From Perna viridis (taxonomy: Eukaryota), in assembly GCA_037379345.1 (NCBI GenBank), contig CM074514.1, positions 21,018,001-21,082,000 of the forward strand: a DNA stretch of 64,000 nucleotides, read 5' to 3'. The notes under the pieces were generated by a model. That model was not told the origin of the DNA. It ran no database searches and saw nothing but the letters and a program-made list of their open reading frames with translations. The translations under genes and the position numbers were made by a program. This document shows, piece after piece, positions 14,929 through 64,000 of this stretch. The first letter of the stretch is position 1; each line of letters opens with the position of its first letter.

Positions 14929-14930
14929 CA

Positions 14931-15437: not shown

Positions 15438-15508
15438 TAAAATGTAATATCAGATAAAATACCATCATTAGACTATTGACTTGGCCAGGAGATTTGAGCC
15501 CATGTTCT

Positions 15509-16067: not shown

Positions 16068-16641
16068 TTATTTATGGGCTGCTGCGATAGCGTATATGCT
16101 TGCATCCACTCTTCGAGACCCTCATAATACTTCTTGAGCTGTTTTCCGGCCCTTACCACGACCTAATAAACCTCGTAAGGGTGACTGGCAAAATGGAGTT
16201 GTAATTGAATCTTATCCATTTACTTTTGGAATACGACGTTCATTTTCTGACCATCGGATTCAAACTGCAGGATTCTGTCGGAGATGACAAGAGCAAACGC
16301 TTCAATGTTGGCTAGAACATTGCGCGAGAATTCGTCCCGGTTTTGAACGTTTGATTCTTTTAGACGCTCGGACTGGTGACTTACATCGATTATAAACAAG
16401 GGGTACCATTCGAGAGGTTGATTCCACTTTACTGAGCAGAGTGTCTATGTTGTAGAATTTCTTTCTGAAGTCGGACACCTCTTTGAACTCTTTTGGTGAC
16501 CATGTTTTCGTTGAAAGCCAAATTATAGTCGATGGCTTGGTAACGTTCAGCGTTGATGGTGACATGCTTTACTTTCGATGGCTTTGCACAGTCGCATTTT
16601 ATTTTCGTCAGAGGGGTGACGTAAGGGACGAACCACGAGAT

Positions 16642-17088
16642 CTAACGCAAGAGGACCACCTTTGCCAAATCGTTTACGGCGGCGGCCCTCAGGACAGCAT
16701 TGGCGTCTGAATCGCGAACGAGTGGGAGTTCGTGCCTGAACCCGTATACGATCTTGTAATCATCCGCGAAGCCAAATATGTGCTTCAGAGGGATGGCAAA
16801 TGAAAACGACCCTTTACTGGTTGGTTTGGTAACGATGAAAACATGGCTGGCTGCAAATCCAGTGTTATCAGCCTCGGCGTAGGTAATATTATCCTTATAC
16901 CATAGTTGGTTGAGACCTTGTGATTTGGAGAAGTCGTCGGGATAGGTCAGCATTCCCAACATGGTATTTGCGATACCAGGATCGTTAAGGTTTTCGATCT
17001 GCTGTCCGAACAACCTGTAACTGATGCTCTTGAAGAGATACACGATACAATGATACAAGGTCTGCATCAGCATATGCGGTACCATAGT
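16642..17088 (-). pseudogene. Polinton/adintovirus-like double-jelly-roll major capsid protein fragment
   Basis: GTAYADADLVSL / YLFKSISYRLFGQQIE..DPG.A.TM.G.L.Y.DDF..SQGLNQLWYKD...KGSFSFAIPLKHIFGFADDYKIVYGFRHEL.LVR.SD matches the recalled Polinton MCP signature. Truncated at both ends; GC content above flanks. Confidence 0.75.
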
Positions 17089-17249
17089 TCTTCCATCTCT
17101 CTACGGCTTTTGTGGCCCCTTTTCAACACATTTCAAGGCTGCATTGATGGCAGAAATCACGGAATTACTTCCCAGTGTTGTTCCATCGACTTTGTTCTAT
17201 AAGCAGTCTGTGATTAGTGGTCCGAAATTTGCAAAATAAAAAATAATCT

Positions 17250-22749: not shown

Positions 22750-25700
22750 TTAAGTGTACAACTTACACAGTCTCTCTGCTTCTCTTACACCAGATGACAT
22801 TGCACCGTGTGTAGTAGAATACCATTTCTCGTGTGTCGCTTCCCCTGCAAAACATAAGACGGGCTTATTCTGGACCAATATTGGTTTCCCCAAGTCTGAT
22901 CCACATTCCGCATAGGAGTTAACGGAATAGTTGCTGTATGCTCCATAAAAGAGAGGATTTGTACTCCACGACGACACCTTGATGTCTGTTGGTTCTGGGA
23001 TACTTTCATCAGCATAGATTTTTCTGAAGAGTTTTGTACACAGCTTTCCAACTTCTTGTTTTGGCAGGTTGCAAACTTGTTTGGAATCCTGGCCATATAA
23101 CCAGAAACCTAACTTATTTTCTGTGGTTGGTATTTCAATTATGAGTGCTGTCTTAAACCAAGACGGTAGATTCATCTCACTGAAGTTTTCCCATGCAGTA
23201 TACCTACTTGCTTCCCCTAGTTGCCAAAAAGGTTTCTCGTAATACAAGTAAATTCCTTCAAGTTGACCATATCCCATTCTCTCTATAGCATCTCGTTTCC
23301 AATGTGGAAGCTCGGGAACAAAAAGTGCTTTATGAAACTCTTTCAAATGCCCAAGTGGACATGTAATGATGACATGATCTGCATTGCTATTACATTCCTT
23401 GTCGGCTGTTTGACACGTTATCGTGACGCAATCAGTATTTTCATCGTTCCAGTTTAATCTGATAACTTTATTTCCCAGTTGTACTGTTCCCACCGGAAGA
23501 TCGTTTGCCAGACTCTCAATGACTTTATAATATCCCCCTGGTACGACGATATCTTTTCCTTCTGAAAAACCTTCATTTACCGGGAAAAGTTTTGCTGATA
23601 ATTTATCAGCGTTATTTCCGGCGGATAATGACATCATTTCGATAAGACAGTTTAGTGCAATTTTTACGTCAGATCGTTCTTTTTCTGCTATACTATCTAT
23701 TGTTTTCTCTATTCTTCGCCTAAAATACTTCTCGTACGAAACAGTTTCCTCCTCCTGGTTTTCATTTTTCAGTTCCATTTGGATAGCCTCAAAGATTCCA
23801 AAGGCTTGTTGCAAAATGTTACCACCCATGACATTGCCTTTTTCTGTACACCATGGAATAGATTCTCTAAAAAGAAACTGGCCTGTAATTTCCTATATTT
23901 TTTTTTATTTCTATTCTTGTGATTTATGAGTTACACATGTGAAAGGTGTTAATGTTTTAAATGCTTGCTTTATATCTGATACTGACTTCAGTATCTTTTT
24001 TCGCCTACGAAGTCACGGCGAGACACTGCACAACGCTACTGCGCGTCCTTTTACTTATATTGTAAAATAAATTTGTACAGTGTCCCTCCGAATAACCCTT
24101 TTGAACACACCATTTAGGAATTGTTAAAAAAAAATTACATATTTTTGTTTTCGAAAATCTAAAACACTTAATCAAATCAAATGTCAGTGTCACAGGTTTA
24201 CCCTTTAACACGGGGGTGATGTATATACAATAATATTAGAGTAAATGTTAAACTTTCGGAAAACCTAACGTTCTAAAACTTATAAGTCGCAAAACGATAT
24301 TTTTAAATTTTGTAAAATCTTCCAAGTTTGCATTTGTCTTCTTATAGACATAGAAGCATTTTTCAAATTACGAAACGATAAATACCATTCAATTTATCTT
24401 TTAAAATAATTTAAAAAAAAACACGACGCTGGTCCCTTTAAAAGGTCGTGTGTATGGTGTTGTAGAATGGATAAGTTTCTTGAAAATACTTTATAAGAAA
24501 TAAATCTAGAGACGCTGAAGAGACTGAATTGCTCACATGGAGAACTAAAAATCATGTATCATTGGAACAAACGTAGATATTTAAAGAGGTCCTTATACTT
24601 ACATCATTTCTATTACCCGTTGAGCCACCTGAGTTGCACAAAAAACGGATGCTTGAAGAATGCATTTAGGCCAACAACACTATCAAGTTTCAAAACATTA
24701 GCATCTGTGGTTTCAGAGAAGTTCATCTCTAAAATTGGCCACTCAGAAGCTTAGATAGCGGCGATCTAGTTTAATTAAGAATGTACCAAAACTTTATTAC
24801 AAGTAGTAATTATCGTTATTTCTACCAAATGTTGTCACCATTGGCTGAGTATAAGCAGATAAAAGTGCCTTTCCGCAAAAATTTTCATTAGATATTTGCA
24901 AGAAAACTGCTGATTGACCTATGGAATATTTATACCTAGTTTGGTTCAAAGTAGTCAGGTAGTTTTAGATAAGAAGATGTTTAGAAATCATAAAAAGAAA
25001 AAAGCGCCAAAAATGGACAAAAGATCTTATTTCGGGGTTTTGACTCCGTAAAAGACTATCCTATTTTCTGAAATTTTGACTGATGAAAGGTATACAGTTA
25101 ACATTCTCAAGAATACTGCTATAGCTTTCATTTAATTGTAAACAAAACACTACCGAACTGGTAAAATTATCATAAAAGGGATAATAACTTTAAAACGGGT
25201 CGTTTGGCTAACTGTTCAAGCAAGATTTCCACGAAAGTCTTAGGTTTCTCCTATGTGTTTCGGTTTTTGAATTAGACCCTAAGGTCTATTTTAGTAACAG
25301 TGGTTATGTTTTTTGACGGACCAAATATCCAAAATGCACGCCATCCTAGGGAATAATCCTATCAGATTTTATTTTTTCAATAGTTTCAGAGGAGAAATGT
25401 TTGAAAAAAAATTAACGACGACGACGAAGACGCCAAGTGATGGCAATTGCGACCAGGTGAGCTTAACATTAAAAAAATATAATTTGTTACCTATCAATGC
25501 CTGAATATGGTTCTTTTATCAGCCCTCTTTCTTTTGCAAACATAAACACAGGATTCTCTTCGCTGCTATCGTGAATGAAATTAGCACCTGGATTTATAAA
25601 TCCATCACCAAACTTTTCGGTCCACATTCTTCCTCCAGGCCTAAAAAAATAAAGAATAAATATCAAACGAAGTGAAGTATTTATTATTTTTTTCTTTTTT

Positions 25701-45640: not shown

Positions 45641-46422
45641 ATGGTAAGATTGTAAATTTCTAATGGGCGTGAAGAGGAAATGTTTTTTTTTGTTTTGTTT
45701 TGTATTGTTTGTTTTGTTTTTTTTTTTTAATTAAAATCACATTTAACTTGATTCTGTCTGAATATTTAAAACCACTACAATAGAAAACAATTGCAGAGTA
45801 ATTTTGTAAAACAAGAGTGAAAAATATAGATTGTTTTCGCTTCGTTAATTCATTTTTGAAATTAACAAGAGGTTACAATCTTAATTCAATTAACATCATT
45901 AGTCATCAAATTTCTATTTCTTATACCTACGCACAAAAAAAATTGACAATTTGTCTATATAAAACATTTTTATGTGATTGTACAGATGTTTAAGGTCGAA
46001 CTTAATTATTCTTACTGTAGTCTTACAGCACCTACAGGGATAGGATCAGTCATATGACAATTAATGATATTATAAGAGATTACAGACACACTTTAGACAA
46101 TACCTACCGACGTAAGCTGCGTGAAGTCCGGAACCATATTGATGGCTATCTTGATGGAGAAACCAATGTTGAAGTCGTTATTCAAATCCCTGACTTATTA
46201 TGTGAGCCGATTCGGTACCGTTCAGGAAGTGGAGAAAACCGATTAACTATAGATATTGGGCGTTACTATGTCGATTATACTTGGACCCGTCGTACTTTCA
46301 CAAAAAGAGCAAAGGACTTTTTCGGGGGTGTTGTAAAAAAAGTCGCTGGATTTTTTGGATCATTGTGGGGTGGCATCAAGTCCATTGGGAGCTCAATGAC
46401 GAAAGCGATAGGATGGTATTAA
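45641..46422 (+). CDS. G1: uncharacterised 134-aa protein with C-terminal cationic amphipathic helix
   Basis: Exon 1 contributes only ATG (CAAAATG|GTAAG, 45641-45643). Exon 2 is 46021-46422 after a CTTACTGTAG acceptor. Protein MSYSTYRDRISHMTINDII...KDFFGGVVKKVAGFFGSLWGGIKSIGSSMTKAIGWY. Clear paralogue of G2. TATAAAA at 45545; AATAAA at ~46548. Confidence 0.85.
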
Positions 46423-47063
46423 ATGTAAAACCATGTCAATTTTGAATATATATTATTTTTTTCAATACTGCTCAGCTATACGCAATGTAGAATAACTTTG
46501 TTCAGACCGACTGTATATCAGGAGAAAAAAGTCTGTTTAGATGGAATAATAAATGAATTAAGGAACATAGTAGTGTTTGACAGTAATTTTGTACAGTTTA
46601 AGCAATGAAATATACTTTAATTAACTTCTTTACTGGTAAAATATTTTCATATGATTTTCCCATGATTTAATGATTTTCACTAGAATTAAACAATTAACAT
46701 TTAAAGTTTTGTGTTAGAGTTAACATGCAGTTGATATGAATAAAGTCTTCAAATTAATTTTTGCATGAGTGTTTTACATAACCATAATGTTAGTGAGGTT
46801 AATGTGAACGCGCATTACTTTCATTTTAAATCCGTACAAATTGTAGTTAGGCTCGGTTGTAGGATAATATTATGTTTTAATATGATATTCATATTTTATC
46901 TAGCCAACATTTACATATGAGAATCATATGACTATTCATATGTGAATCAACACATGTAATTATCATATGTGGACCTTTTTGTTTAGTTAAAAGGAAAGAA
47001 CGAAAAAGTATTGTTTTAATTTTTTTTTTCAACATTGCAGACGAACATGCACGGAAGGTTCAA

Positions 47064-47200
47064 AAAGTAATCAAGGGAACCTAGATTCTAGCGGAAATCA
47101 AAAGAATGTAGTCTAGGGACAAAGACCAGACATGGCAAAACAAACAAACACAACGAAGAGCATAAATCAACCAAAATAATATATACATAGTAACAGAAAG
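47064..47200 (-). mobile_element. Decayed Naiad-like 3' terminus
   Basis: AGTAATCAAGGGAACC..AGCGG.AATCAAAAGAATGTA..GGGACAAAGACCAGACATGG matches the family. Confidence 0.7.
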
Positions 47201-47308
47201 ATAAGTACATTGTTTAAATACCCCCCAAAATATCATTCCACCACAAACAAGCATATTCGGAGCAAGAAATCAGTATTATAATGTAAACGTTCTCTTAATT
47301 CGATAATT

Positions 47309-47796
47309 GTTTGTTTGTTTGTTTGTTGGGGTTTAACGTCCGAGCAGCAATATTTCAGCTATATTCAGACAATGAACATGAAATGAAAAAAAAGGATGGG
47401 TCACAAGGATAATAGGGTCGACAAATTTTGATTTCCACTGGAGAAAGGGGGGATGGGTAAGGTCGGGCAATTTAGCCTCCTGTGGCGGAGCGCAAAGGTT
47501 CCTACTCCTATCGAATACCACAGCAGGGTTCTTTAACGTGCGAGGAACGTGGCATCTTTCCCAACACGGTTCACCACTATGGTTTGCGGTCAGGTTTTCC
47601 GTATTATAGCCTGACAACCCCAGCATGTAACACGCCAGGGGTACCCCATTCCACCACCTGGGACACACATCCCAGTTGCTCTGTGGGCAGAGCGCCCTAG
47701 CCCCCGGCAAGCGTTCTGAGCACTATTTAGTCGCCTTTTACGACAAGCTTAGCGCTGCTGCAGGCCTATTCTTTTAACACCCGGACCTGCACGGGG
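47309..47796 (-). mobile_element. Full-length SINE (Nin/Deu-domain-like), subfamily A
   Basis: Same head and tail as the other copies. 15-bp TSD CTTAATTCGATAATT (47294-47308, 47797-47811). Confidence 0.9.
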
Positions 47797-49716
47797 CTTA
47801 ATTCGATAATTAGGTGAAACGTTTTGTTAAAGAGATGGTCCATGAAAGACCCAGGCAATAGGTGGTACATGCAAAATGTTGATTTTAAACACTTGCCACG
47901 AATTTAAAAATAAAAGTGCTGTTTGGTAATTTTCAGAAATGGCAGGTATGAAAATTAATTACATAGGGAGCAATAGAGACTTTAAAATAAATGAAAAAAT
48001 ATTTCTTTGAACTGTTTATTATTTAGTGGACAGTCTTTTAAAAAATTGGCCAAATTCTTGCAATTTAAATGGTAAATACCAGCAGATACCAAGTTAATTG
48101 ATATAGGATTGAGAGAGCATGTAGGTCGTACGAAACATTTTATAAACATTTGCATGTTTTATTCAAAGCAAATTATCAAGTTAGTTAACATTTATTTAAA
48201 AAAAGTATTTGAAGATTAAAACAAGTGAGACAACCTCACACAATAAATTTCTAAATTATTTCGCTCTTGATTTTAAATTATATCTTTGCCTTTAAATGGA
48301 ATCATGAATATGTTGGTCATTCAATTTCTGAATTTCGATTCTGTTCAGCAACATATAAATTGAAACTAAAAAAAAAAGAGAGCAATGCCCTCTTCTTAAT
48401 TGATACCCCGCTCCTGCATTTAATAACATTCACTTTTTGACTCATGGCCTTAAAAACAAGAAATGAAGATCTTTATAAGGACTACCTTTGAACCAACTAT
48501 ACTTGATTGTTTTTAAAGAATATTGATTCTAGCGAGCCATCAAGCATATAATATTGAGTATAAAATTAACTATTCCTTACCAAATTGGTGGTACCTTATA
48601 TCAAAGAATCCCAAAGATCTAAACCAAAAATAGAAGGTTCACATATTTGATATTTGATTATTATTATGTGAAAGTGCCACCTCAAAATTCCACTTAATGG
48701 TGTTGAGGGTGCTCCGAATATGCGATGGATACCCTATATTTACAAAAAAAGCCAGCCAAGCTAATGTTTTGCCATTGAGAAACCCTAAAAAGCGTTCTGA
48801 TAAAATCTGAAATAGCAAGTGAACGTCTTCAATATATGATAAATAATTTGTGCCTTCAAATTCCATGAAGTGGTATTGTATGAGTTGCGGATAAGAGATA
48901 TGTACTATTTATTCATAAAATTCTTAGTTCATGTTTTGTTTTAGACCTCCTCACCCACAACCCCCCAAAAATCATAAAAGCTCGGGAATACACTCACTAT
49001 GTTATTTAGTTTTATTCTTTCATCCGTTTTCTTTAACGGGTCTGCAAACATGATTTTTACTGATGATGTAGAGTCAAACTCATTTTTTAACGTTTTCAAT
49101 AATTTATTTGACATACACTTTCGGAAAGATAATTCAGTTTTGTTTTAAAGATTTGAAATAGGATTATAATGTTTCCTTTTGAAGAGTTTGAATTTTTCCT
49201 TGGTTACTTACGTTTTCAATATTTACAATATTTAATCAAATAACGCCATAAAGGCTATCAGTTAAATGTTTGCGATGATATGTTGCCAATATTGACAACA
49301 ATCAATTTAAATTTCAAACTGTATCGAAAATCAAAAACTATTTAAAGTATCCATATATCTGTTCAATACTTGAATACGTTCTTTGTGTAAATTCGGAGAA
49401 ATTGTCATAAATTTCTAATACATATAACTTGTTTCGCGGAATTATCTAGAAGGAAGTATCAGAACTTTGATTTTTCATTTGCTGTCAGAAGTTATTTGCT
49501 GATTGAAATGATTACGGAAGCCGAAAAAGGACCATTCAAAATTCAGGATTCAAAGTTCAGAATCCAAAATTCAGGACTCAAGAAATTAATGACTGGTAAC
49601 TTTCCCGTGTTCTGTTTTTACAATTTTCAGAATTCAAAAATCGGAACTTGAGAAAACTGGTACTTTCCCGCTTGTTTCAACACGCCATGACTCTTCACAT
49701 AAAAAATCAAATTTTC

Positions 49717-49857
49717 TTGTCTTAAATGACTTGCTCAACAAACCATTTAAACGTAAACAACATCTTCTAGCAACCCGATCACTGTAAACATGGCCGACTT
49801 TTTACAATGTAAATATTGGCACCGAGAATATAAATCTGAGCAAGTCATTTAAGACAA
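49717..49857. repeat. Perfect 21-bp inverted repeat pair (MITE-like, 141 bp)
   Basis: TTGTCTTAAATGACTTGCTCA (49717-49737) and TGAGCAAGTCATTTAAGACAA (49837-49857). Confidence 0.8.
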
Positions 49858-50344
49858 TTTAAACGACGGTAGGTGTCAATAAAGTCGTAGAAAATATTTT
49901 TATTCAAATTTTAACAGTATATTATTTATGTGACGCCGAGTATAGTCAACATTAAGAATGAAAAGTGCACGCATTTTAAGAAAATTGTGTTTGTTTCTTT
50001 AGTTAATGATGATAACTAATATACTTCAAACTAAAAACGTTTTATTCCTTTGCAAATACGGTGTCATATCTATTTTGTCATTTCTTTTCATAACTGGTTG
50101 TTGTTTATCTTATGCGCAGTGTTTGGTTCGTCACACAATCATTTGTCCAATTTAAAGAACATTTTGATTCGCACTCTTGTACTTCCTTATTCTTTATTTA
50201 GTTGTTCCACGAAATGATAAAATCAATACCTCATTCCAATCTTTTTTTTCATTGTGATTCCATATTGTATTTCGTCATACATATGTATAGACATACTTTA
50301 TGCAATGGAAGTTTTCAATAATGTTTCAAACTCAACTAATCAAC

Positions 50345-52692
50345 TATAAAATTACAAACAGTTATTAGTTAAAGAACTGTTCTGTAACAAAATGGTAGAT
50401 CTTATGTTTTAATCAGAGACAAAACTTTACTCATCATACAGAAACCCCTTCTTTGATGTTCCAGATTATAAACTTGAAAGAAAAGATAGAAATTGGAATG
50501 GTGGATGTATTGCAGCACTTATAAGATCTGAAATACCAGCTAGAAGAAGGTGTGACTTAGTAAATAAAACTTTTGAAAATATTATTTTTGAAGTTATATT
50601 AAACAAAACAAAATTGGCAATCATATGTATTTATAGACCACCTTGTATGAAAGACTCAGTATTTAGTAAAGAGTTTTCTAATACACTAGACCAATGTATT
50701 ACAAAATATGATCATTATATAGTTATTGGAGATCTGATAACTGATCCACCTGCGTATAGAGTGTTCATATCTCAACTCATACGTAATGCCAGAGCTTACC
50801 GAGACTACGCAGACTTTTTGTACCGCGCTAGAATTCTAACAAATAGGATTCTGGAGCAGGGTTATGTTGCTACAAGATTGAAGTCATCACTACAAAAGTT
50901 TTATGTCCGTCATCATGAACTCGTGGATCGTTTCGGTGTAACCATCCGCGCCATGAAAACTGATTTGTTCAATGTGTCATAGTTTTCCTTTCCTCTTTCG
51001 TCTACCCCGGACTTGACTTTTTATGAGCAATTTGGGGGATGTTTCTAGAAAAGCAGAGGACGCTTACCCTACCGGTGCACCTGGTCCATTCTTCCAGTTT
51101 TTAGTGGAGTCTGAGTTGCTCATTTGCTTTTGTTACTTTGTATGTATGATTTTAGTTACTCTATGTTCTTTGTTGTGTATGTCTGTTTTCTTGGATTGCA
51201 TTCTTTTGATTAGCTTGGTTCCCTTGATTACTCTGAATTATGATTTATCGAATGATTCAAAAGGGAAGACACTAGCAGATTTAATTGATATATTTGACCT
51301 AAAAAATTGATAAAAGAGTCAGCCTGTCATATGAAAAACTTTTAGATGTTATCTTGACCAACTCCAAAAATTTATGCATGAAAACATTAAATGTTGCAAA
51401 TGGTATAAAATGTAAAACCATTTATTCCTTCATCTGCAAGTCATGGTTCAGATTCTATTGAAACACAAGTAAACCAGACTTAGTTTGAATAAGATATTTG
51501 CAATATCTTTGATCAACATGTACCAATCAAAGAGATGTATGTTAAAAACAATCAGTTACCCTATATGAATAGAGAATTACGAAAAGCAATCTATGAAAAG
51601 AAAATGCTTTATAATAAATATCTCAATGTAAAAAATGCAAAAAAATGGGGAAAAATATAGAACAAAAGGAAAACCATTAAGCCATATTCTCCAAAAATCA
51701 AAAGGTACACAAACAAAATTATATTACAAGAAGAAAATGAGATAATAACAATTTTTTTTGTAAATGTCGCCAAAGAAATAGGTAAAGATTATAAATTTGA
51801 TAAGAGTAACCACCCAAGCCTTCAGAAGATTGAAGAAAAGGGTTTTAAACAGAATAACTGTTGTTCCAACAAGTGAATCTTTTGTATCAAAGGTCATAGA
51901 CAGATTTAATGTGAAGAAACAACAGCAGTTGATAAAATGTCAGTTAAACTCATGAAATATGGCAAACCATCTTTATGGCCAACAATAACTAAACTAGTTA
52001 ACCATTCAATAAGTCACTCATCCAGTCACTCCATTATTTACAAAGAGCAACTACAGACCAGTCAATTTACTACCTATTCCATCAAAAATATTCTAAAAAG
52101 TTTTAGCTGAACAGTTGTCTACTTTCTTTGATTTGCTATTTTTCATAATTTTTTATATGCATTTCGAAAAGGCCATGGTTGCCAAACAACATTATAAAGT
52201 TTATTAGAAGACTGGAAACAGGTGTTAGATAATAATGAATATGTGGCAGCCATTCTTATGGACATGTCAAAGGCATTTGACTGTCTGCCACATGATATTT
52301 TAATTTGTAAGTTATCAGCATATGGTCTCAACAAAAAGTCTACTGACATGTTATTATCATATTTGTCATGGCGTAAGCAACAAATAAAGATTGGCTCTTG
52401 TGTCAGCAGCTGGGCAGAAATTCAGAAGGGGGTTCCGCAAGGATCAATTTTGGGTCCTTTGATGTTCAACGTGTTTATAAATGACATTTTCTATTTATTT
52501 CAAAAAAGAGATTTATTCAACTATGCTGATGGCAACACATTTTCGTTCGCCAAATTTTAATGAAGTATTAGATGTACTACAATCAGAAAGTACAATTTTG
52601 ATAAAGTGGTTTCACTTTATTTGTATGCAGGCAAATCCTGAAAAGTTTCAGCCCATAGCTGTTGGCAAAAAGACCTTTGATAAAACACCTAC
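50345..52692 (+). mobile_element. Decayed CR1/L2-type LINE ORF2 (APE endonuclease + RT), interrupted by a Naiad-like insertion
   Basis: SETKL, RKDRN..GG, CIYRPP and IGDL|NYD (split by the insertion). RT MDMSKAFDCLPH...GVPQGSILGPLMFNVFINDIF...NYADGNT, then QANPEKFQ. Confidence 0.85.
50745..51234 (+). mobile_element. Naiad-like Penelope 3' portion nested in the CR1 endonuclease
   Basis: PAYRVFISQLIR..ARA...LKSSLQKFY plus 3' UTR. TCTGA occurs at both junctions of the host GATCTGAAT (DLN) codons. Confidence 0.85.
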
Positions 52693-52920
52693 TTTGGCCA
52701 AATACTGACAACTTAGTGGCGTTCGAAAAAAAAGCTGTATCGAAATTTGAAATTGCGTGTCATGTGTTATTTCCTGAATGAAATGCAGAAAATTTTAAGT
52801 TAAAAGAAAAACATTACTGCGTCGGCTATCTTTCTGTAACTAGTTGTTTATGATTTATTTTAAATGACATTGGATCTGAATTATTTAGTGTGTGTCTGTT
52901 ATTGAAACTTAAATATATTA

Positions 52921-52923
<3 letters not shown>

Positions 52924-52972
<49 letters not shown>
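52924..52972. repeat. (TA)n microsatellite
   Basis: About 24 TA units. Confidence 0.97.
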
Positions 52973-52977
<5 letters not shown>

Positions 52978-54094
52978 CGTGTATGTTAATTATTAATGTG
53001 GGTGTGTGTTACAGTGGTTGAAACCTAGTCATAAAGTTGATATTAGTCGAAAACATAAGATGTTTATAGTCAAAGGCAATCGTTCAAAAGCCAAGTATTT
53101 CGTCTTAAGAAACCATAGGAAACAAAATTTCCGCTTGTTGGTACCTTTGATGTAGCTAAATTCTCTATCTTAACGTGGGAAAGTATTACTCTGGACGATT
53201 TTAAATCATTGTTTTTATATTACTGTATTCACAGTTATGATTGGTTTTACTTTCGTGATGGAAGCGTTTAAGAAAATTAAGGTAGCTAAATGTTAAATGT
53301 ATTTTTTTTTCAATTTCAAGCATATAAATGAAAATCAAATAACAAAACTTTCAAAACTTTTAAAGGAAAATGCATTATCTGACATGAAAAACCATTCCTT
53401 AATAAAATACATGCCAAATATTCATATTTCGGAAATTTACCAGAATCGCGATGCATGTACTTTAAGTTATTAAACTGTTTTTCTTAAAAGAAAGATGACA
53501 TGAAAGACGCTCGAAATAAAAATCAATTGTTGACAGTTTGTTTAAAAGCATTTCGCTGAGACGGGTCGCTTTCAGACGAGCAAATTCCGGAAATATTGTC
53601 ACAATGGTATTTTATTTAAAAACAAGTTCATCATATACTGTATACATGCATACATGTATATTCCATATATTAATAATTGCCAATTTACTCTCTATTTCAT
53701 AACTTAATGGTCATATCCATAGATCTACCTATCAAACAATGAATGTATAAATAATGTACATTTATACCATGCAATGCAACATGTTTCTCGTAGATGAATA
53801 GAGTCCTACCAAATGCCTATTTACTTTTAGACTTACCACATTGTGGACCTAAATAAAAGTTTACATATTTATCATTATTATTGCAAGACCTACAAGTACG
53901 TTATTAATTAGGTTCGAATGATGAAGAGTATAAAATATAGCGAGAAATTATAGCAATCTTACATGACAACTACCTTGTGCTATTGCTTTAGTTCCATGTT
54001 TAAATGTAAGAAGATTTTTTTTTCCTTTTTTTTTTTTCTTTTTTCTTTTTTTTTTTTTTTTTCTTCTTTTATATATCTCTGATTGAAGAAAGGC

Positions 54095-54336
54095 TCAACG
54101 TAGTTTTCCTTTCCTCTTTACGTGACATTTTATGTGCAATTCTGCAGTTGTTTCTAGAAAAGCAGAGAATGCTTACCGTACCTGAATACATCGTCTATGC
54201 TTTCAGCTTTTAGTGGAGTTCGAGTTTACTTCTATTTCTTTGTACGCGTTGTTATAGTTATTTCATCTTCTTACTGTTTGTGTCTACTTTCATTGTCTAG
54301 TTGTAATCCTTTATTACCATTCGAATCCTGGTTCCT
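54095..54336 (+). mobile_element. Old Naiad-like 3' UTR copy
   Basis: TAGTTTTCCTTTCCTC...TTTCTAGAAAAGCAGAGAATGCTTACC...TTTTAGTGGAG...GGTTCC. Confidence 0.7.
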
Positions 54337-54614
54337 TTATTTTCCTTTCATATTTATGAACATGTACATTAATAGTGGCAAACGTGTATGATTATAGAAT
54401 ATTTTCTGTGTTTGCTTAATTCGTTTTTAAATAGTGAAACCTTGCCATAAAGTTGAGGAGAAGAGGAAAACATGAGATGTCGATAGTCAAAGGCATTGGC
54501 CATAGATCAATTGTATAATTGTTTTAAGAAACCAAATGTTTAACAGAAATAAACATGTTTTGTCAAGGAATAATAGTCTAAAAAGGTTACGACAGCACTT
54601 GAAAACAAGTAATA

Positions 54615-54887
54615 TCTTTAAAAAAAAAGATAGCTGATGCAGTTAATTTTTTTTCTAAGTTTCTACATTTCTTACAAGAAAATAAAACATGACACGCAAT
54701 TTCAAATTTTCGATACAGTTTTTTCGAACACAACTTAAAATTTCCTATTCTGTATTTTGAACGCCACCAAGTTATCAGTATTTGACCAATCGGGAAACAT
54801 AATTGCTATCAGGTGACTTGCGTTTCCATAGAAGATCTTTAAGGTTAAAGTAAAAAGCGAAACTATACCGACTGCGTCGGAAAAAAC
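54615..54887 (-). repeat. ~260-bp dispersed MITE-like repeat; other copies at 57622-57875 (+) and 52693-52833 (+, partial)
   Basis: Shared CCGACGCAGTCGGTATAGTTTCG...CAAGTCACCTGAT...CCCGATTGG.CAAATACTGA...GGCGTTC...GCTATCTTT, with sub-terminal inverted motif CCGACGCAGT/ACTGCGTCGG. Confidence 0.75.
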
Positions 54888-55290
54888 ATACAACAATGTG
54901 TCGCATCATGTACATTTATTTCATATTAGTATGAATTGTGTAAAAATTAATCTGGTTGGCCATCAATTTGATATGTGATTGTCATTAAGTTAAGATTGTT
55001 ACAATGAATGTGAATATTATTTATGGATGTCAAATTTTAACTAGCACACTTATGTTGTTTAATTACATTAACAAACCAATAAGAGGGCTTTATTTTTTGG
55101 TTTGATGCCGATTCCATTCTTCTTCTGGGTGTCTAGTTTTTTTTAATCCCACTGTAACGAACAAAAGTGAAGTGAATATTTTCGTCATTGACTAAAATAA
55201 CTAAAAAGTTTTAACCACAAAAATAGCACGTAAAAATGTTTAATGAATCCTACAGGTGGCTTACATGTTTGGCGGTTTCTACTAGAATCA

Positions 55291-56471
55291 TTATCCAAAC
55301 CATGTAATAGCCTTCATGGCAGTTCCAGCAATACTTTTTACGTGTCCCCATAATTCACTAAGACCTTTAAGAATTTTTTCTGCCGCTTCTTTAAAGAAGT
55401 CTTTAGTTTTTTTCCACCATGTCTTCTTTGTCCAAACAACTTCAATGCCTTCTTCTTCTATATCTATAAGCAGTTCATTATCTCCAGCTCCTGTCTGCAG
55501 CTTTATGGGTTCGTCCAGCTCGTCTGATATATATATGTAGACTGTAAGATTTTCTTCTCCTTCCACTGCCTTATCTATTATTGTTCTAAGTTTTCTTAAA
55601 TTCGATCTAACTGGAACTGACAAATTTCCTTTGTTTTGTTGAATAATTCTGTTGATGTCTTGATGTGAGACACGCCCATTAATTGTGTCTGTCTTTAACG
55701 AAATAAAATTAGATAAGTTAAAAAAAATTGGTTGAATTGTTTGTAATTGTTGAATTTCAGTTGTATATAAATCGTGTTAATTTGGAATATTCAGTAATAT
55801 TAATTAATCCATCTATTACTTCTAAACAACCCTCCTTGTTGAAGATTTGATCGCAGATCTTGGCAGATTTGTTCTTGTCATTAGTTGTTGGAAACTATTT
55901 CAACTTGCGAATCTTTTCTTACAAATGAACAATAATCTAAGGTAAAGAATATGCTTACATTGTACATACATGTACATTATTTTTTTTTATTATATTTGAA
56001 AGTAGGATGCAGATTTCATCTTAAAAGAGAGCATTTTTTTTATATCCGGAATAAATTATCACTCGGCCTGCCGGGTATATAAGGAATATCATTTGCTAGT
56101 GGAATACCAATGTTCGGTATTTTCGTGGTTCGGTGAAAACATGAATTTCTTAATTCACAACGAAATATAAAATTAATTTCCATCGAAAACTAAGTCTTAT
56201 TCAAATACCCAAGAACAGACGTAATTGTGTCGCACAATGCAAGTTAATACTTAATTTTATTATGTAAGGGTTGATTTTGTGTTTTAAAAAAAATTAAGAG
56301 GACTAGAGGACTAGACTTTCGGAAAATTATGTTTATCATATAGACAAGCCATTTAGCAACAAATTGAATGAACACCTTTCTAATTTTACAGAACTTCATT
56401 AGATAACGAATTTTACTGTAATACAGTAATCTCAACAAAAGACAAGTCTATATTTTGACAATACTCACCAT
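55291..56471 (-). CDS. G2: uncharacterised 134-aa protein, paralogue of G1, C-terminal amphipathic helix
   Basis: Exon 1 contributes only ATG (CAAAATG|GTGAG, 56471-56469). Exon 2 is 55692-55291 (402 nt, same length as G1 exon 2; AAG acceptor). Protein MTDTINGRVSHQDINRII...KDFFKEAAEKILKGLSELWGHVKSIAGTAMKAITWFG. 52/133 identities to G1 without gaps (hand count). Confidence 0.85.
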
Positions 56472-56723
56472 TTTGGCACTGCTTTCCTTCTTGTAACTTA
56501 ATAGAATCCCGTAAGAAACTATACAGAAAGTAAAAGTACATATATTTGGTCTATTTTAAGAGCATATGAAATTTAAAGTTCTACGAATTATAGAAAAATC
56601 CCAATTCAAATGAATATGTATGTATATCTGGAAAATTTATTCTTCTCGATATTATTATAATTTATCAATTAGAGTTGCCAAGTTCAAACAGGGAAGGAGC
56701 AGCCCAGACAGACCTGTTAAGCA
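56472..56723. promoter_or_regulatory. Putative compact bidirectional promoter between G2 and G3
   Basis: Only 252 bp separate the two divergent ATGs. Contains a kappaB-like GGGATTTTTC (minus strand, 56593-56602), TGGAAAATTT (56629-56638) and an IRF-like GAAAGTAAAAGT (~56526-56537). Confidence 0.55.
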
Positions 56724-58707
56724 ATGGCACATTTAAGTCCGGTAAGACATTATTGATATTTAATCTTTAAACTATTAGATTATAAGAAATTTACAGTTAA
56801 ATTTGTGAATATTTTTAGACAAATTCAGAATGAAATTCAACCGCATCGTTTTCCGTTATTGCCTTTTCTTTAGTAGACTTTTTTTACTAAACTGTTAATT
56901 TAGTGTAACTTCAATTGTAATTTGAAAAGTAGTTTGAATACTACAAAATCAAAGTAACTGTTTGCATCTTTCAACCGACAAGTTTCTTAATATATCGTTT
57001 TAGAGGCATGGCATGGCTGAGAATAACTATGATGAAATCGACAAAGAGGTAAGATATAAGTATCGAGTGTCATCAAAAATTCTTCGGCATTCTAAAGTGT
57101 ATAAATTCTCTAGTATACCATTTGTTTTTCAAAATACAACGCGTGCCATTAAATTCAAAGCTTTTATGATACAGACTATTTGATATATTATATGTAATCT
57201 ATACTTAACTACTTTCCTTGTAAGATATATGCTGCTCACCGGAAGAGACAACAGAAAGTCGGGAAAACTGTTGAAAGTGAGGTAAGAGGTTAAATTAAAT
57301 TAATTCGACTATTATAATATTATTTTGGGGGGAGGGGATCTCACGTTTATTTTCATTTCTCTAAGATGTAAAAAGAAGTTATTTATTATTCTTTCATTTT
57401 GTGACTTTAAACTTATGAAAATCTACTCAAACTGGTATATTTATTCTGAACTTTTTACATTGATACAATTTTTACATCGTATTCCTCATCAATCAATCCA
57501 CCATTCTGATTCAACAAAATTTGTAAAAGCTTTGAGATGTAGGATCTTTTTCATATTGCTCAACCATTGAACGAAACTCGTCTAAAATCGCTTGACAGAT
57601 TTCTGCCAAATTTGGTAGATTATTTTTTTCCGACGCAGTCGGTATAGTTTCGTTTTTTTACTCTTGACTTTAAAGACGTTCCTCCATGGAAACACAAGTC
57701 ACCTGATCGCAAGTCTGCTTCCCGATTGGCCAAATACTGAGAACTCAGTGGCGTTCGGAAAAAAACTGTACCGAAAATTGAAATTACGTGCAATGTCTTT
57801 TTTTCCTGAATGAAATACAGAAAATTATAAGTTAAAAGAACAAATTTTACTCCGTCGGCTATCTTTTTTAAAGATAGGGCTTGTTTCAGTTCTCTAGATT
57901 TGCATACTCTATCACCATTTTTAACGGACTTGTCTAGTTTTTTTTTAACATTTCTTTCTCAATCGTAAAAAATGTTTTATGACGCTTCTCCTTCGAAACT
58001 TTAGTGTGTAAAATGTATTAAAGTGTAGATGTAATTATTGATCACTTTTTCTATTAAACAAATTTTGTACGGGTATTGAAACAAAGACAACTTTAAATCT
58101 CATTAAAAGCTGGGTCATTCGGTGACGTGCAACAATCTCATTTTTATATTTTTATTCGAAATATAAGATAGTAGCATTTTAATAATCAACTTATGCATTA
58201 CAGTTTCTGGATGAGATCATAAAAGCCAATGATATCAATAAGAGAGTGATAGGGAAGGTCATGGTGACGTACTGTGGCAACGAAGGGGCAGAACACGATG
58301 AGAGGACGGCGTCACTGCGTAAACTCCTTCAAGCAGTTATTGATTATATTCAAGTTAATCCAAAGGTGAACTGGCATAATGCTGAGATTACTGTCTATGA
58401 TCTTGATGATAACTCTTTCAGAATAATTAGTGGACTTGGGAAACACCAGTATGTTGTTAGTGATGATGGTTCTGGAAAAGCAGACATTATGAATACATCC
58501 AACAAAATACAAAAAGCTCCAAAAACTCCGACAAAAGAAAAACAATCGAGAGATCATCCATATGGTTTCCAACATGGGACGCATTCAGCGAAATACCCCG
58601 GTCGGCACGACGGGTTTCCTCATCATCCAGGACAGCATGGGAAGCATCATGACCCTCGTGGTCACCATCACAACGGACAAGAAGATTCTAGCTGTGTTCT
58701 ATGTTAA
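56724..58707 (+). CDS. G3: uncharacterised 207-aa protein, distant G1/G2 homologue with His-rich tail and C-terminal CaaX (CVLC)
   Basis: Exons 56724-56741 (MAHLSP), 57004-57048 (RHGMAENNYDEIDKE), 57225-57281 (IYAAHRKRQQKVGKTVESE) and 58204-58707 (FLDEIIKANDINKRVIG...HHHNGQEDSSCVLC*). All introns phase 0, GT-AG. AATAAA at ~58905. Confidence 0.8.
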
Positions 58708-59642
58708 GCCAATGTTATTTGACTACTTGATTTTGTTTTATAATTAACTCCTTTCGAAACATTATCTGAATTAAGTTACTTAAACTATTATGGTATTGCT
58801 GTAACTTGTTGAACATTTGATAATTTTTTTTCCATATGTTGTCATTTGTATACATTTTGTAGCTTGTCAATGAAATTGATAATGCATCAGTATTGATAAT
58901 TGAGAATAAATAAATAAGAGGAAGTTCGAACATCAAAAGAAACGGCGTCTCTCCTGTAAGGTACGCTTTTTTACCTTTAATATCACAAATTTTAAAAAAA
59001 TCGTAAACCCACAATGAATTATGGCTTAAATGAGCAACAATTTTTGTAAGAAAGAAAATTGAAGGAACGAGGAAAGCCTACTGACAAGGAAGGTTAACAT
59101 AAACCCATTGTTCACTTTATGGGTAAATTGCTTTCACATATAGAGATATTCGATCCCCAAGTTATTTTTTTTATATCATAATACATCAATTCTTTCCCAT
59201 TTAGTGCTTGGCGTTGCTATTTTAAACCCAGCCAGAATTGAAGTGCCTGATTTCTTTTAATGCTGGTAGTGTTTATGGTTTCATCACTTTTTAATACTTT
59301 CTGAGCTACCTTTCAGAAACTCAAATGCTGGTAGTGTTTATGGGTTTCTTTAATACCTTCTGAGCTATCTTTCAGATACTGCGAGCATTAAATTCTTTCT
59401 CTTATATGTCGAGATATCCTCGAAGAGAACTGATGGAATTTCATTGTTTTTTTTTTTTTTTTTTGTTTTTTTTTTTTTGTTTTTTTTTAATTTTTTATTA
59501 TTATTTCATTTTTACCTTACTTTGAAAGAGAATGTTTAATGCCTAATAAAACTAGTTAAACTCCATCACAGGTTTCATTCGTCTGTCCACAGTCAAAAAT
59601 GTGGTCGTTTTTGTCGTTAAATTACCGGGTTTATTACAGTAA

Positions 59643-59717
59643 CTCCTGTTTTCTGGGCATTTCAGAGCTCCTGTTGTCTGGGCCTTTCAGAGCTCCTGTT
59701 GTCTGGGCCTTTCAGAG
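59643..59717. repeat. Tandem repeat, 3 x 25 bp
   Basis: Unit CTCCTGTTGTCTGGGCCTTTCAGAG. A separate ~60-bp direct duplication lies at ~59259-59380. Confidence 0.85.
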
Positions 59718-60791
59718 TTTGCCTTAAGATGTGTTTATACCAGTTAAAGACCTTAATGTAACCTCTGAAGATATTTACTGTTAAATTTACCTTATGAGCC
59801 CATATATTTGTGTGTTTCACCATATCCGGGCTTTTTTCAATTTTATGTCGTAAAAATGGTATACTGTAACTGCACTTAATTAAAATACAAATGTATGGCT
59901 CATAGTCCATGGAAAGTTGGATGCAGTATCAAAAAAAGTCATGTCAACAAATGAAAGCAACTAAATAAAAATACACAAAAAAAATCTTCAATTGCTTTTA
60001 AGACTATAGCAAACAGGGATTAGATAAACATCAGGTGCATTTCAAAAACACAGAGAATAGTTTTGTCATATGTGGTTTTAAACGAAAGAGGAAACAAATT
60101 AAAAATAGAATCTACCTACCAGCTGTTCTTAAAGTGGCGTGATCATGAATTTCGATTACAGGAAATCGCTCTACGAATGTTGTCCATTATTTCGGTTTAA
60201 ATGGGTGTCCCGATCTCAGTACATTGACTTGACAAAAATATGGTCATATCATTCTCTACAGCTTTACTTAAAAGGTCTGTAGGTCTTCTGGTAATAATCA
60301 CCGCTTTAGGGTTTGTTTTTACCATGTCATGCAAAAAAATAAACAAAATGCAGGAAAAGTATAGAAGCATAATCTGTTCCAAATTTGGTAACAAATTACC
60401 CTAGCTGATATTTTCAATCAATAGGAGTTTTCAAAATCAAAATCATTATATTGTTTTGCATTGGGCTATTTGAATCCAGGTTTTATTTATTTAATTATTT
60501 ATTTTTTTGTTTGTTTTGTTTTGTTTTTGTTTTTGTTTATTTGTTTTTTTTTTATTTTGGCTTTTTGTTTGTTTGGTTTTTTTTCTTTTTAAAGTTTAAA
60601 CCGTAATTTATGTTATAATTGCATGAGCGCAACAATACATAATATTCCAATAAGAATTAAGAAACAAGTTTTCGAATATAAAATCTGTATGTTAGTTTAC
60701 ATGATTAAAGTATTAACAGCATCAGTAAAATTGATTAATATTTGCCTAGTGAAAGGAAGATAACTCGTATTGAAAATACTTAAGACATATA

Positions 60792-63700
60792 CTTTGAACA
60801 ACTTTTGAACAACTTTATTCAGAAAAACACTCAGCCGTAGTTCATGCTACGGAACAGGAGCGAATATATATATACAGTTTACAATGGAAACGAAATGAGT
60901 AGACAACAGACAATATTTTTAAATACACAAAAACAAAATACACTAATTCATTGTCACACAAATGTATTGAAATTCAAAAGTACATTTAGCCTTATCATCA
61001 CCGGAAATTATATCACGTGGTTTGTATTTTACAACACGTTTATAAAAGAAAGTCAGACTCTCATATAGGTTTAACGGATTAATGTGACAATATGTGTACT
61101 AGTATACAATTTAAAAAAATATATGTATATATGGGATTACTGTGTGCCTACAAAAGTTTTGCAACTTTTGCGATGAAGATAGAAAGGTTAGTCAATACAT
61201 TTGTGTTACAATACATTATCATTCCATACAATTTATTAACATTCGGATTGGCTGTATAGTAACCTGGAATATACTTATTTCTAAGTTCGGTTACAAGATC
61301 ATGATTGCACAAAGCAACATAATGAAACTCATCCCCCAGACCTGTTCGACATAAAGTGCAGACCCGTTCATGTTGTGGTGTTCCGTACCATCTTCCTGTT
61401 TCCATAGGAAATTTTATATTGCATGTTCGAAGTTTACATATAACTGTTCTGTGATATTTTTTGAGTCTCAGTAAGTATGGCTCGAGACGAAACTCAATTT
61501 TAAACTTCGAATAAAAATTTCCTCTGGACGAAGCATCAATATCAGAATACCATTTCTGTATGAACTGGTCTTGTAAGATCTGTTTCACAAGAAGTTTAAG
61601 AAAATTGATATTAACATTCCCTTGTATATTCCAAATTTCACTACATCCAATATCATCAAAAACTGATTTTATGTAACATATCCATTTGAAAGATCGATCA
61701 CCGTTTTCATACATATTGAACATAAGATTATACAATTTACCAGATAATTTATCTGTGTTATTTACAAGTTTAAACCAGAAACATATCATTTTAAGCTTGA
61801 TGCTGATTTCAATAGGGTATCGTCCTAACTCTCCATACACCATAAAATTTGGAGTAGATGAACGCAGATTTAGGATTTTCTTGCAAAATTGAAGTTGAAT
61901 TTTTTCTATATTTGACTTATTTTCAAAGCCCCATATTTCTGAAGAATAGGTTAAAATAGGGGCTACTAATGAGTCAAATAATTTCAATTGCAAATCTATG
62001 GGAATACTTATGTTATTTACCTTGTAATAAAGAGCATAAAGAGCTTTTTGTGCCTGCTCTACGAGTTTGTTTCTGGACTTATAAAAATTACCATTATAAT
62101 TGAATATAAGACCCAGATATGTATACGAATCACATATTTCTATATTCTGCTCAAAAATATTAAAATGTACCCTTCTAGTAGATTTCCGCTTAGAAAAAAT
62201 TATAATTTTTGTTTTTGAAACGTTCACAGTCAGCTTCCAAGTTGCACAATATTGTTCAAATACATCTAAAGCAGTTTGTAATTCCTCAGGTGTATCCGCA
62301 AAAATTACAGTGTCATCTGCATATAGAAGCATAAACAATTTAATATAAAATCCTATATTTTCTAAACTTTTTGTATCTAGATATTGTAAACTTGAAATAG
62401 AGTTTTCGGTAAAAAACTCTTCCAGATCGTTTAGATACAAGGCAAACAGAAAAGGAGAGAGTTTTTCCCCTTGACGGACCCCTATTTCACATGGGAAATA
62501 TTCTGTTTTGAGTTCTCCCATTTTAACACATGATTTAATATTAGTGTACATGTTCAAAATAACATTAAACACTTTCCCACTAATATTATTTTTTAATAAT
62601 TTTTGAAATAATCCAACTCTCCAAACTGTGTCAAAAGCTTTCCTGAAATCAATGAAAGCACAGTACAATTTTTTACCTGATGAAAGATATAGAGAAATGA
62701 GGGAGTGAAGAATAAATATATTGTCCTGTGCACTATAACCTTTCCTGAAACCACCTTGAGAGTCAGATATAAGTCGAAATTCATCAGACATCTTATTGAG
62801 TCTAGTGTTTATCACAGAGGTAAACACTTTACCCAAGTTGGATGTAAGACAAATTGCTCTATAATTATCTAAATCATCCCGATCACCTTTGTTTTTGTAT
62901 ATGGGTTTAATAATTCCAGACAACCAAGTATCAGGTATCAAGCCCGTATCTAAAACAATATTGAACAATTTTACATATATTGGCAACATATTGGCAATAG
63001 AACTTTTTATAAATTCATTGACAATTTCATCGTCACCTGACGCTTTACCATTTTTTAAAGATTTAATTGCCAACTTGATTTCATCTTCAGTAATAGGACA
63101 ATCCAAAATGGCAATCACATCTTCATCAACATTAAAACTATCAGCATCAGGATCAAACTCCGTATCATCGTCATTTTTATTTAACGATTTAAAGTATTCG
63201 TACAACTGCTCAATAGTGATTTTATTATGAGCATTTGTTCCTCCTTTTCTTACTCGATTCAAAATTTTCCAAAGTTTTTTTGAATCTTTCTTGGAGGTTA
63301 GACGTAAATCTTGTTCGAATCTGTGCTGATAATTTTTGTAACTCGTATTCATTTGCGATTTGTACTGTTTACTCGCATTTTTAAGAGCCTCCCAGTTTTC
63401 TCTATTCTTAATAAAACTATACCGATTCCGTGCCTTATGAAATTTTGCACGTGATTCGGCACACTTTTTATCGAACCAAACTTTACGATTTTCTTTTTCG
63501 GTACTACGGCGCTTTGGTTTGCCAAATGAAGACAATGCCGATTTTTTAAACAAAGCAGCAATTTGACGGACAACTTCGTTTAAACTATCAACGGACACTT
63601 CACCTTGACCCTGTGACCGAATTTCTTCCAATTTTGTTTGTAACTCAGTTAGACATGTGACGTCATTATTAATCGATTCAATAAACCGGTTCTCCTTATA

Positions 63701-64000
63701 ACTCACCCATCTAGGGACATGCGTAGGTGAGTTATAAGGTGGAGGCGTGGGATTTATAGTAACTGTGCTCACTGAAGCATTGAGACAAAACGTAATACAA
63801 TTATGTACGTCAGAAAATAACGGATCAAAGTCATTCACATTAAAAAAACTAAACAATTCAAAACAATGCGAAGACAATAATACATAGTCAATTAATGAAA
63901 CATTTTTACAAGTTTTAATACCGACTTGGTAGTCATTTCCTGGTAATCTACCATTACCTATATACAAATTATTTCTTTTACAAAACTCAATCAATTTATA
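60792..64000 (-). mobile_element. Young LINE retrotransposon (RTE-X/CR1-group-like), continuing past the window end
   Basis: Uninterrupted ORF2, then a 3' UTR with hairpin CCGTAG-N6-CTACGG (60835-60852) and tail AATAAAG-TTGTTCAAAAG-TTGTTCAAAG. Confidence 0.9.
61148..63994 (-). CDS. LINE ORF2: APE endonuclease C-terminus, reverse transcriptase, C-terminal Cys/His motif (5'-incomplete)
   Basis: 948 aa without a stop: SLIDY and SDVH (EN); FIDFRKAFDTVWR, GVRQGEKLSP and LYADD (RT); ETGRW..ERVCTLC..GDEFHYVALC. Confidence 0.95.
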   Translation of the reverse strand: MIEFCKRNNLYIGNGRLPGNDYQVGIKTCKNVSLIDYVLLSSHCFELFSFFNVNDFDPLFSDVHNCITFCLNASVSTVTINPTPPPYNSPTHVPRWVSYKENRFIESINNDVTCLTELQTKLEEIRSQGQGEVSVDSLNEVVRQIAALFKKSALSSFGKPKRRSTEKENRKVWFDKKCAESRAKFHKARNRYSFIKNRENWEALKNASKQYKSQMNTSYKNYQHRFEQDLRLTSKKDSKKLWKILNRVRKGGTNAHNKITIEQLYEYFKSLNKNDDDTEFDPDADSFNVDEDVIAILDCPITEDEIKLAIKSLKNGKASGDDEIVNEFIKSSIANMLPIYVKLFNIVLDTGLIPDTWLSGIIKPIYKNKGDRDDLDNYRAICLTSNLGKVFTSVINTRLNKMSDEFRLISDSQGGFRKGYSAQDNIFILHSLISLYLSSGKKLYCAFIDFRKAFDTVWRVGLFQKLLKNNISGKVFNVILNMYTNIKSCVKMGELKTEYFPCEIGVRQGEKLSPFLFALYLNDLEEFFTENSISSLQYLDTKSLENIGFYIKLFMLLYADDTVIFADTPEELQTALDVFEQYCATWKLTVNVSKTKIIIFSKRKSTRRVHFNIFEQNIEICDSYTYLGLIFNYNGNFYKSRNKLVEQAQKALYALYYKVNNISIPIDLQLKLFDSLVAPILTYSSEIWGFENKSNIEKIQLQFCKKILNLRSSTPNFMVYGELGRYPIEISIKLKMICFWFKLVNNTDKLSGKLYNLMFNMYENGDRSFKWICYIKSVFDDIGCSEIWNIQGNVNINFLKLLVKQILQDQFIQKWYSDIDASSRGNFYSKFKIEFRLEPYLLRLKKYHRTVICKLRTCNIKFPMETGRWYGTPQHERVCTLCRTGLGDEFHYVALCNHDLVTELRNKYIPGYYTANPNVNKLYGMIMYCNTNVLTNLSIFIAKVAKLL

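Follow-up and report, generated by a model that had tools for sequence, protein, structure and literature searches.

REDD1/DDIT4 (PF07809; PDB 3LQ9) carries a conserved surface patch made up of EPCG and KKKLYSSE (PMC4183088). Domain 1 of the M23 endopeptidases (Vibrio cholerae ShyA 6UE4/6U2A, 2GU1; Helicobacter pylori Csd3) is bacterial, periplasmic and attached to a peptidase. Ras/Rho-type proteins end in a hypervariable region and a CaaX box, and in-plane membrane binders use long, strongly amphipathic helices that are too polar to span a bilayer. These systems were compared with a cluster of three genes, G1, G2 and G3, in Perna viridis (genome 723 Mb, 46 contigs). The cluster lies in a stretch of 64,000 nucleotides (contig CM074514.1; G000:C4:21018001-21082000), referred to as the window, and all feature positions are given within it. 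G1 and G2 are called family A, and G3 with its relatives family B. The DNA around the cluster is AT-rich (GC content about 31-37%), and the closest relatives of the window's proteins were Mytilus sequences.

Gene models, transcription, family breadth, synteny, sequence constraint, anchor motifs and secondary-structure order were observed or computed. The original prediction for this DNA had described one domain with two different anchors, kept as a linked and partly co-promoted cluster, and this descriptive claim stands. Judged from their sequences, families A and B constitute two new bivalve protein families without a Pfam model, and they are probably remotely homologous families sharing a beta-alpha-alpha-beta4 domain of about 95 residues. 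The features of the cluster were as follows (coordinates, strand, description).

45641..45643, plus: candidate ATG-only coding part of G1 exon 1, read from sequence (caaaATG/gtaaga)
46021..46422, plus: G1 exon 2, open frame after the tag acceptor (46020/46021), 133 codons and stop; family-A domain, then tail
46309..46419, plus: G1 C-terminal tail, 37 residues, cationic amphipathic
55291..55692, minus: G2 exon 2, open frame, 133 codons and stop; family-A domain, then tail
55294..55404, minus: G2 C-terminal tail, 37 residues, amphipathic
56469..56741, both strands: shared head-to-head 5' region holding G2 exon 1 (minus, ATG 56471-56469) and G3 exon 1 (plus, ATG 56724)
56724..56741, plus: G3 exon 1 coding sequence, ATG 56724, donor after 56741
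57004..57048, plus: G3 exon 2, 15 codons, alternative ATG 57013; joint 56740/1 to 57003/4 (runs X6, X8)
57225..57281, plus: G3 exon 3, 19 codons; joint 57046/8 to 57223/5 (X1, X6, X8); translation fits orthologues
58204..58707, plus: G3 last exon; joint 57279/81 to 58202/4 in 4/4 runs of four studies; His-rich tail, CVLC end
58204..58506, plus: G3 family-B domain, about 100 residues, first part of the last exon
58507..58692, plus: G3 disordered His/Gln/Pro-rich linker, predicted local distance difference test (pLDDT) < 50
58693..58707, plus: G3 CaaX box (CVLC) and stop codon
58708..59435, plus: G3 3' untranslated region; the same contigs extend to 59435 in 4 runs

Families A and B and the evidence for a common domain

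G1 and G2 are true paralogues. Their 402-nt second exons, which had been noted for their gapless likeness, hold frames of 133 codons each and share 52/130 identities with zero gaps (E 1e-28). Searches and folds were run on single exons, with the N-terminal parts of 1 residue (G1, G2) and 40 residues (G3) excluded. A word-based search with family A found close orthologues only. A HMMER scan with the G1/G2 profile across 1.84 billion protein cluster representatives gave 92 matches at E <= 1e-3, about 6 of which were long proteins hit in the helical tail only; the named members were entered as 'uncharacterized protein LOC...' of Crassostrea gigas, C. angulata and Saccostrea cucullata. The family-A core reads roughly NV-V-IY-DD-LD-PI----G-GEN-L-I-I---G---Y-WT--TW-K; the tail after it varies and is hydrophobic or amphipathic. 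Two- and three-domain versions exist (P0049, P0033). In this genome, G1, G2 and two divergent copies on contig C1 were the only family-A genes found. The C1 copies (46366699-46367022 and 46374131-46374454; L018:188-553 and 7620-7985) are 7.4 kb apart, identical to each other and very divergent, lack the D-E-P-I segment, and have no family-B neighbor within about 10 kb.

Family B was found in Mytilus, in Saccostrea, and as a paralogue on contig C5 of this genome. The C5 paralogue (G000:C5:14960212-14960889; L009:1183-1860) is a single exon encoding 225 residues with two tandem domains and a CVIL end (geranylgeranyl-type), and no family-A gene was found within about 10-20 kb of it. Its Mytilus orthologues, among them a named M. 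galloprovincialis hypothetical protein, are 69-84% identical and end in CHIM or CNVM.

Four profiles searched against PDB sequences gave no match, Pfam gave noise only for the three proteins and 60 family members, and Foldseek returned nothing at E <= 1e-3 in the PDB for the G1 or G3 model, nor in the viral BFVD for G1; the domain was thus as unrecognised in these databases as it had been at first reading. The ESM Atlas held no usable match for G1, and the stored G3 homologue gave none. Nothing relevant was found in the literature on oyster family-A loci and on bivalve CaaX proteins.

The link between the two families had been drawn from short motifs, which are present in G1, G2 and G3 as written and in the same order. 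BLASTP in pairwise mode did not detect similarity of G3 to G1 or G2. Recovery of G3 by a G1/G2 profile, proposed as a check whose failure would formally refute the prediction, failed with narrow profiles (nothing by hmmsearch; hhalign A vs B, E 0.22) and succeeded with broad ones: hhalign of A3 vs A4 gave E 3.8e-4 (probability 36%), and addition of the oyster B domain gave E 4.9e-4 over 82 columns. The hhalign alignment is the one drawn in the original prediction. A 68-sequence A alignment scored 23.2 over 81 columns against a domain-only B alignment, a value reached by 0/237 column shuffles (mean 10.2, standard deviation 2.3, maximum 20.9). In cross-family hmmsearch, 4/68 A sequences and 5/21 B domains outscored every one of about 2100 controls made by shuffling or reversal. 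As a negative control, A3 and A4 were run against the genome's own REDD1 (RTP801_C), with hhalign E of 0.46 and 0.45.

AlphaFold modeled the G1 core (residues 10-95) at a pLDDT of about 95, in the order E4-6, H11-20, H27-44, E50-55, E64-68, E73-79, E84-90 and H96-108, followed by a low-confidence tail. The G3 core was modeled at a pLDDT of 70-87, in the order E4-10, H13-24, H33-51, E58-64, E71-76, E81-87 and E93-97, followed by a disordered tail. The elements of both models come in the same order, each in register with the hhalign alignment. In the exhaustive VIA search, the best analogue of G1 was human REDD1 (3lq9_B; 6.5 / 3.3 A / 84 / 3.9), and that of G3 was the N-domain of a Vibrio M23 peptidase (2gu1_A, ShyA in Foldseek; 6.5 / 3.6 A / 83 / 4.4). 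Both VIA scores fall short of 7-8, which the tool gives as the upper limit of chance matches, and each analogue was absent from the other model's list; the fold was therefore left without assignment. Of the common alpha/beta core fold that had been proposed, the secondary-structure order is borne out and agreement on the best PDB analogue is not.

That G3 is unrelated to G1 and G2, with two unrelated orphan families brought together by chance motifs and a common helix-then-sheet pattern, would account for the blank BLASTP and narrow-profile results and for the differing PDB analogues. We consider this unlikely, as chance is hard to reconcile with the broad-profile statistics and the shuffle controls, the secondary-structure elements are in register, and G3 shares with G1 and G2 a layout of tiny 5' coding exons and one large domain exon. 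A relationship between A and B by remote homology is, on balance, quite probable.

The G1 analogue raises a further reading, in which the proteins are divergent REDD1/DDIT4-like stress regulators with a REDD1-type alpha/beta sandwich that act in TOR or stress signaling at membranes, as REDD1's basic patch does. This is very improbable. REDD1/DDIT4 has no sequence or profile similarity to G1, G2 or G3, it is not matched by the G3 model, and it lacks both an amphipathic tail and a CaaX box. No EPCG was found in G1 or G2, and the last strand is followed only by a generic basic stretch. Membership of REDD1/RTP801 (PF07809), assessed by the RTP801_C profile, was rejected on the lack of a Pfam hit and the hhalign E values above. 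The canonical REDD1/DDIT4 of this genome (RTP801_C, E 1.5e-32) lies at C4:3124946-3125302 (L025), on the same chromosome and 18 Mb from the cluster. The M23 domain 1 has no sequence similarity to the cluster proteins, was not matched by G1, and scored in the grey zone for G3; an M23 peptidase regulatory domain (ShyA/Csd3 domain 1) was rejected, as G3 has no peptidase domain or Pfam hit.

Transcripts, tails and the CaaX box

Transcription was checked in RNA-like Logan assemblies from four runs (X1, X5, X6, X8) of four studies, mapped to 54300-59800 (G2 and G3); Logan contig depths are unsuited to ranking expression. Spliced transcripts, which had been expected, were seen for both genes. G2 exon 2 was covered by RNA-like contigs in four runs. 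The splice joint 55692/56469 was seen in an RNA-like contig of run X6 only and leaves ATG 56471-56469, at the end of exon 1, as the sole coding part of that exon, in agreement with the ATG-only first exon read from the sequence. The X8 contig stops short of this joint. High-depth X1 and X5 contigs (54901-56194) continue unspliced from exon 2 deep into the G2 intron, and reflect intron retention or an alternative internal start; these unspliced transcripts lack an in-frame ATG from which the full G2 protein could be made.

For G1, the candidate ATG stands in the same context (caaaATG/gta) as the confirmed G2 exon 1. Contigs of the Mytilus G1 orthologue have a matching upstream ATG without a GT after it, so G1 may instead start at an internal Met (46054). 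The Mytilus-like G1/G2 contigs are genomic-like and therefore uninformative on G1 splicing. Contigs with exact G1 and G3 open reading frames were likewise rejected as transcripts, being genomic.

The coding sequence of G3, assembled from joints and sequence, comprises four exons and 207 residues, with joints seen in 2-4 runs; the original prediction had counted too few exons. The G3 N-terminus agrees with those of the Mytilus orthologues. An X1 contig that keeps 56742-57003 unspliced would start at ATG 57013.

Sequence constraint was estimated against Mytilus-like orthologues, for which synonymous divergence (dS) was saturated and nonsynonymous divergence (dN) was 0.14-0.32. G1 was 68-69% identical to these orthologues (dN 0.22-0.23, dS saturated), and the G3 domain 77% identical to a Mytilus orthologue (dN 0.14). 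The sole computable dN/dS ratio was that of G2 (0.07).

The two families differ in their C-termini. Over 37 residues, the hydrophobic moment was 0.38 for the G1 tail (p 0.001) and 0.45 for the G2 tail (p < 0.001; 2000 shuffles each), with net charges of +4 and +2. The G1 tail is rich in Gly/Ser/Lys/Trp. The maximum 19-residue Kyte-Doolittle mean was 1.0 (G1) and 0.6 (G2), and Lys residues occur along the whole tail, which excluded a tail-anchored membrane protein (a hydrophobic transmembrane segment of at least about 18 residues at the C-terminus). On these values, the tails are predicted to be amphipathic helices and not transmembrane anchors. They resemble the helices of in-plane membrane binders in being long, strongly amphipathic, with a polar or charged face, too polar to span the bilayer, and terminal, but are unrelated in sequence to the named helix families. 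A likeness of the tail to adenovirus protein VI gained no support from the viral fold library, against which the domain and not the tail was compared.

In G3, the last exon ends in a His-rich tail and CVLC, as had been read from the sequence. The box sits at the true C-terminus and consists of Cys at -4, a largely aliphatic pair and a permissive X; the Cys at -4 is kept in every full-length family-B member (CVLC, CIIC, CLIC, CIIS, CTIS, CQIM, CVIL, CHIM, CNVM). Going by known prenyltransferase specificity, a box with X = C, S or M would be a farnesylation site and one with X = L a geranylgeranylation site. The length and repeats of the linker vary among G3 orthologues, and the Cys is conserved although the linker is hypervariable. 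In the Mytilus G3 orthologues P0010, P0012-P0014 and P0017, the linker holds 1-7 copies of a 16-residue repeat (consensus HGRGEHQQDIRPSSRT), so linker length is highly polymorphic among alleles, paralogues or species. A disordered, variable, basic/His-rich linker followed by C-a-a-X is also the Ras/Rho arrangement, but the folded part of the G3 family is not a GTPase (no G-domain motifs, no Pfam hit).

By inspection, the N-termini of G1, G2 and G3 are polar and without a hydrophobic leader, in line with the predicted absence of a signal peptide. On the same ground, a secreted mussel or oyster antimicrobial peptide precursor was rejected.

Head-to-head arrangement and gene neighborhood

The start codons of G2 and G3 are 252 bp apart. 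X6 contig 17 spans 56469-56740, with an intron of the minus strand (CT..AC) to one side of this region and introns of the plus strand (GT..AG) to the other; the 5' exons of the two genes must therefore overlap. The partial co-promotion inferred at first reading thus has its counterpart in a divergent pair with overlapping 5' ends.

Conservation of the cluster in relatives was also supported, with A and B genes found head-to-head in M. edulis and S. cucullata. In M. edulis (L011, GCA_905397895.1), the G3 orthologue (10001-19516, plus) has a divergent G2-like exon (7880-8197, minus) upstream of it. In S. cucullata (L013), the family-B last exon (6552-6956, minus; gene 6549-9546) ends in CQIM, and the B gene is head-to-head with two tandem A genes (10001-10518 and 11530-12095, plus), with 455 bp separating the annotated gene ends. 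The C. angulata locus (L012) carries two A genes in tandem, with a divergent neighbor that extends past its end. The M. edulis G2-like gene (7740-8230) and G3 orthologue (19017-19513) both look frameshifted or truncated, and P0018, the protein annotated in M. edulis, is accordingly missing the CaaX box and a portion of the domain; the frameshifts are due to assembly error or pseudogenisation.

In a maximum-likelihood tree, G1, G2 and the Mytilus-like sequences formed one clade (support 92/96) and both oyster A genes the other. The tree separates mussel from oyster A genes, so the second A copy arose separately in each lineage while the A/B pairing is shared. Gene order thus points to a head-to-head A/B pairing older than the mussel-oyster split.

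Such linkage could be a matter of history alone: an old tandem duplication would have left the genes with a shared bidirectional promoter, and their products would act independently on different membranes or processes. Bidirectional promoters can be kept for regulation alone, this genome contains family-A and family-B paralogues that stand unpaired, and mussels and oysters differ in how many A copies, and which, sit beside B. However, the head-to-head A/B arrangement survives from mussels to oysters despite heavy transposon traffic in the interval, and the multi-domain fusions hint that domains act together. We regard linkage by history as possible, if somewhat unlikely.

The 9-kb gap between G1 and G2 is explained by transposon insertions. 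RVT_1 reverse-transcriptase fragments lie between the two genes (within 50614-52560; 52222-52560), and an open reading frame of 948 residues, of the long interspersed nuclear element (LINE) type, lies downstream of G3 (61148-63994, minus strand). The G2-G3 pair is bracketed by an inverted repeat of 77 nt (54759-54835 and 57680-57756; 86% complementary). The left arm of this repeat falls in a region (54668-55035) where loose ends are numerous and the summed contig depth is very high, and therefore looks like a dispersed short repeat, similar to a miniature inverted-repeat transposable element or short interspersed element (MITE/SINE-like), in or next to the G2 3' untranslated region.

Further away in the window, an open reading frame of 147 residues (16642-17085, minus) matched the Pfam double-jelly-roll-like domain PF21738 (E 1e-10) and may be the remnant of a Polinton/Maverick-like or viral capsid gene. 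A 359-residue exon with a flavin amine-oxidase domain (22750-23829, minus; PF01593, E 2e-47) is probably part of a polyamine or amine oxidase gene, unrelated to the cluster.

Proposed action at membranes

We propose, at roughly even odds of being right, that A and B are paired peripheral-membrane protein families with a shared oligomerisation domain, expressed as a co-regulated A/B unit. Prenylation, membrane binding, contact between A and B and any cellular role are inferred from the features above. Family A (G1, G2) would end in an amphipathic helix of 35-45 residues laid reversibly in the bilayer, and family B (G3) would be held on the membrane by a farnesyl group at the CaaX box, after a disordered His/basic linker, so that both would work peripherally at the cytosolic side of membranes. 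For both families, this membrane-anchor reading follows from predicted C-terminal motifs. The shared domain of about 95 residues would mediate homo- or hetero-oligomerisation, joining A with B or copies of each, and one A gene and the B gene, divergently transcribed from overlapping 5' ends, would form the co-regulated unit. Two- and three-domain versions in both families (P0033, P0049, C5 paralogue) fit a domain that works in pairs; these natural tandem-domain fusions are the only, and an indirect, hint of domain-domain contact.

Several observations weigh against this proposal. In the window's six frames, neither narrow profile found the other family by hmmsearch, and hhalign probability reached only 32-36%. 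The overall pLDDT of the G3 model was moderate (65), and the G1 tail helix was only partly predicted by AlphaFold (H96-108, then pLDDT < 50). G1 and G2 group apart from both oyster A genes, so the layout of two A genes and one B gene either arose twice or was homogenised. No partner lies within about 10 kb of the family-B paralogue on C5 or the family-A paralogues on C1, and A/B pairing is therefore not obligatory.

A more active role was also weighed, that of an effector/regulator, cell-death or antimicrobial module, in which the A helix disrupts a membrane and is restrained by the globular domain or by prenylated B acting as receptor, decoy or inhibitor. The strongly amphipathic 37-residue tail, with the net charge of +4 and the Gly/Ser/Lys/Trp richness of G1, speaks for such a module, as do the tight and ancient pairing with a helix-less paralogue and the expansion and diversification of family A in oysters, as is often the case for immune genes. 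The G2 tail, however, is close to neutral (+2), weak charge is common among the family's tails, no similarity to a known pore-former or death-fold protein was found, and the housekeeping-like presence in RNA assemblies of four studies argues against tight induction; we therefore judge this role to be quite unlikely. More doubtful still is an ancient bivalve- or mollusc-specific two-component membrane module, in which a latent membrane-inserting or lytic A helix is recruited, gated or neutralised by the prenylated B encoded head-to-head with it. If real, the module would represent a novel type of cell-autonomous switch in animals, serving defence or cell death and built on a fold not described before.

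For the proposed paired peripheral-membrane families, the importance lies in the handles that the cluster provides. Bivalve genomes are rich in unnamed lineage-specific genes, few of which offer a handle on function. Here, a confidently folding domain without a Pfam model or a clear solved relative occurs in two sister families that differ mainly in their predicted route to the membrane, with a divergent, overlapping promoter and a gene neighborhood kept in mussels and oysters. Taken together, these features yield a hypothesis that can be tested, that of peripheral-membrane proteins acting in pairs, a well-defined lead and not a mechanism, and adds two new curatable protein families in the commercially important Mytilus, Crassostrea and Saccostrea.

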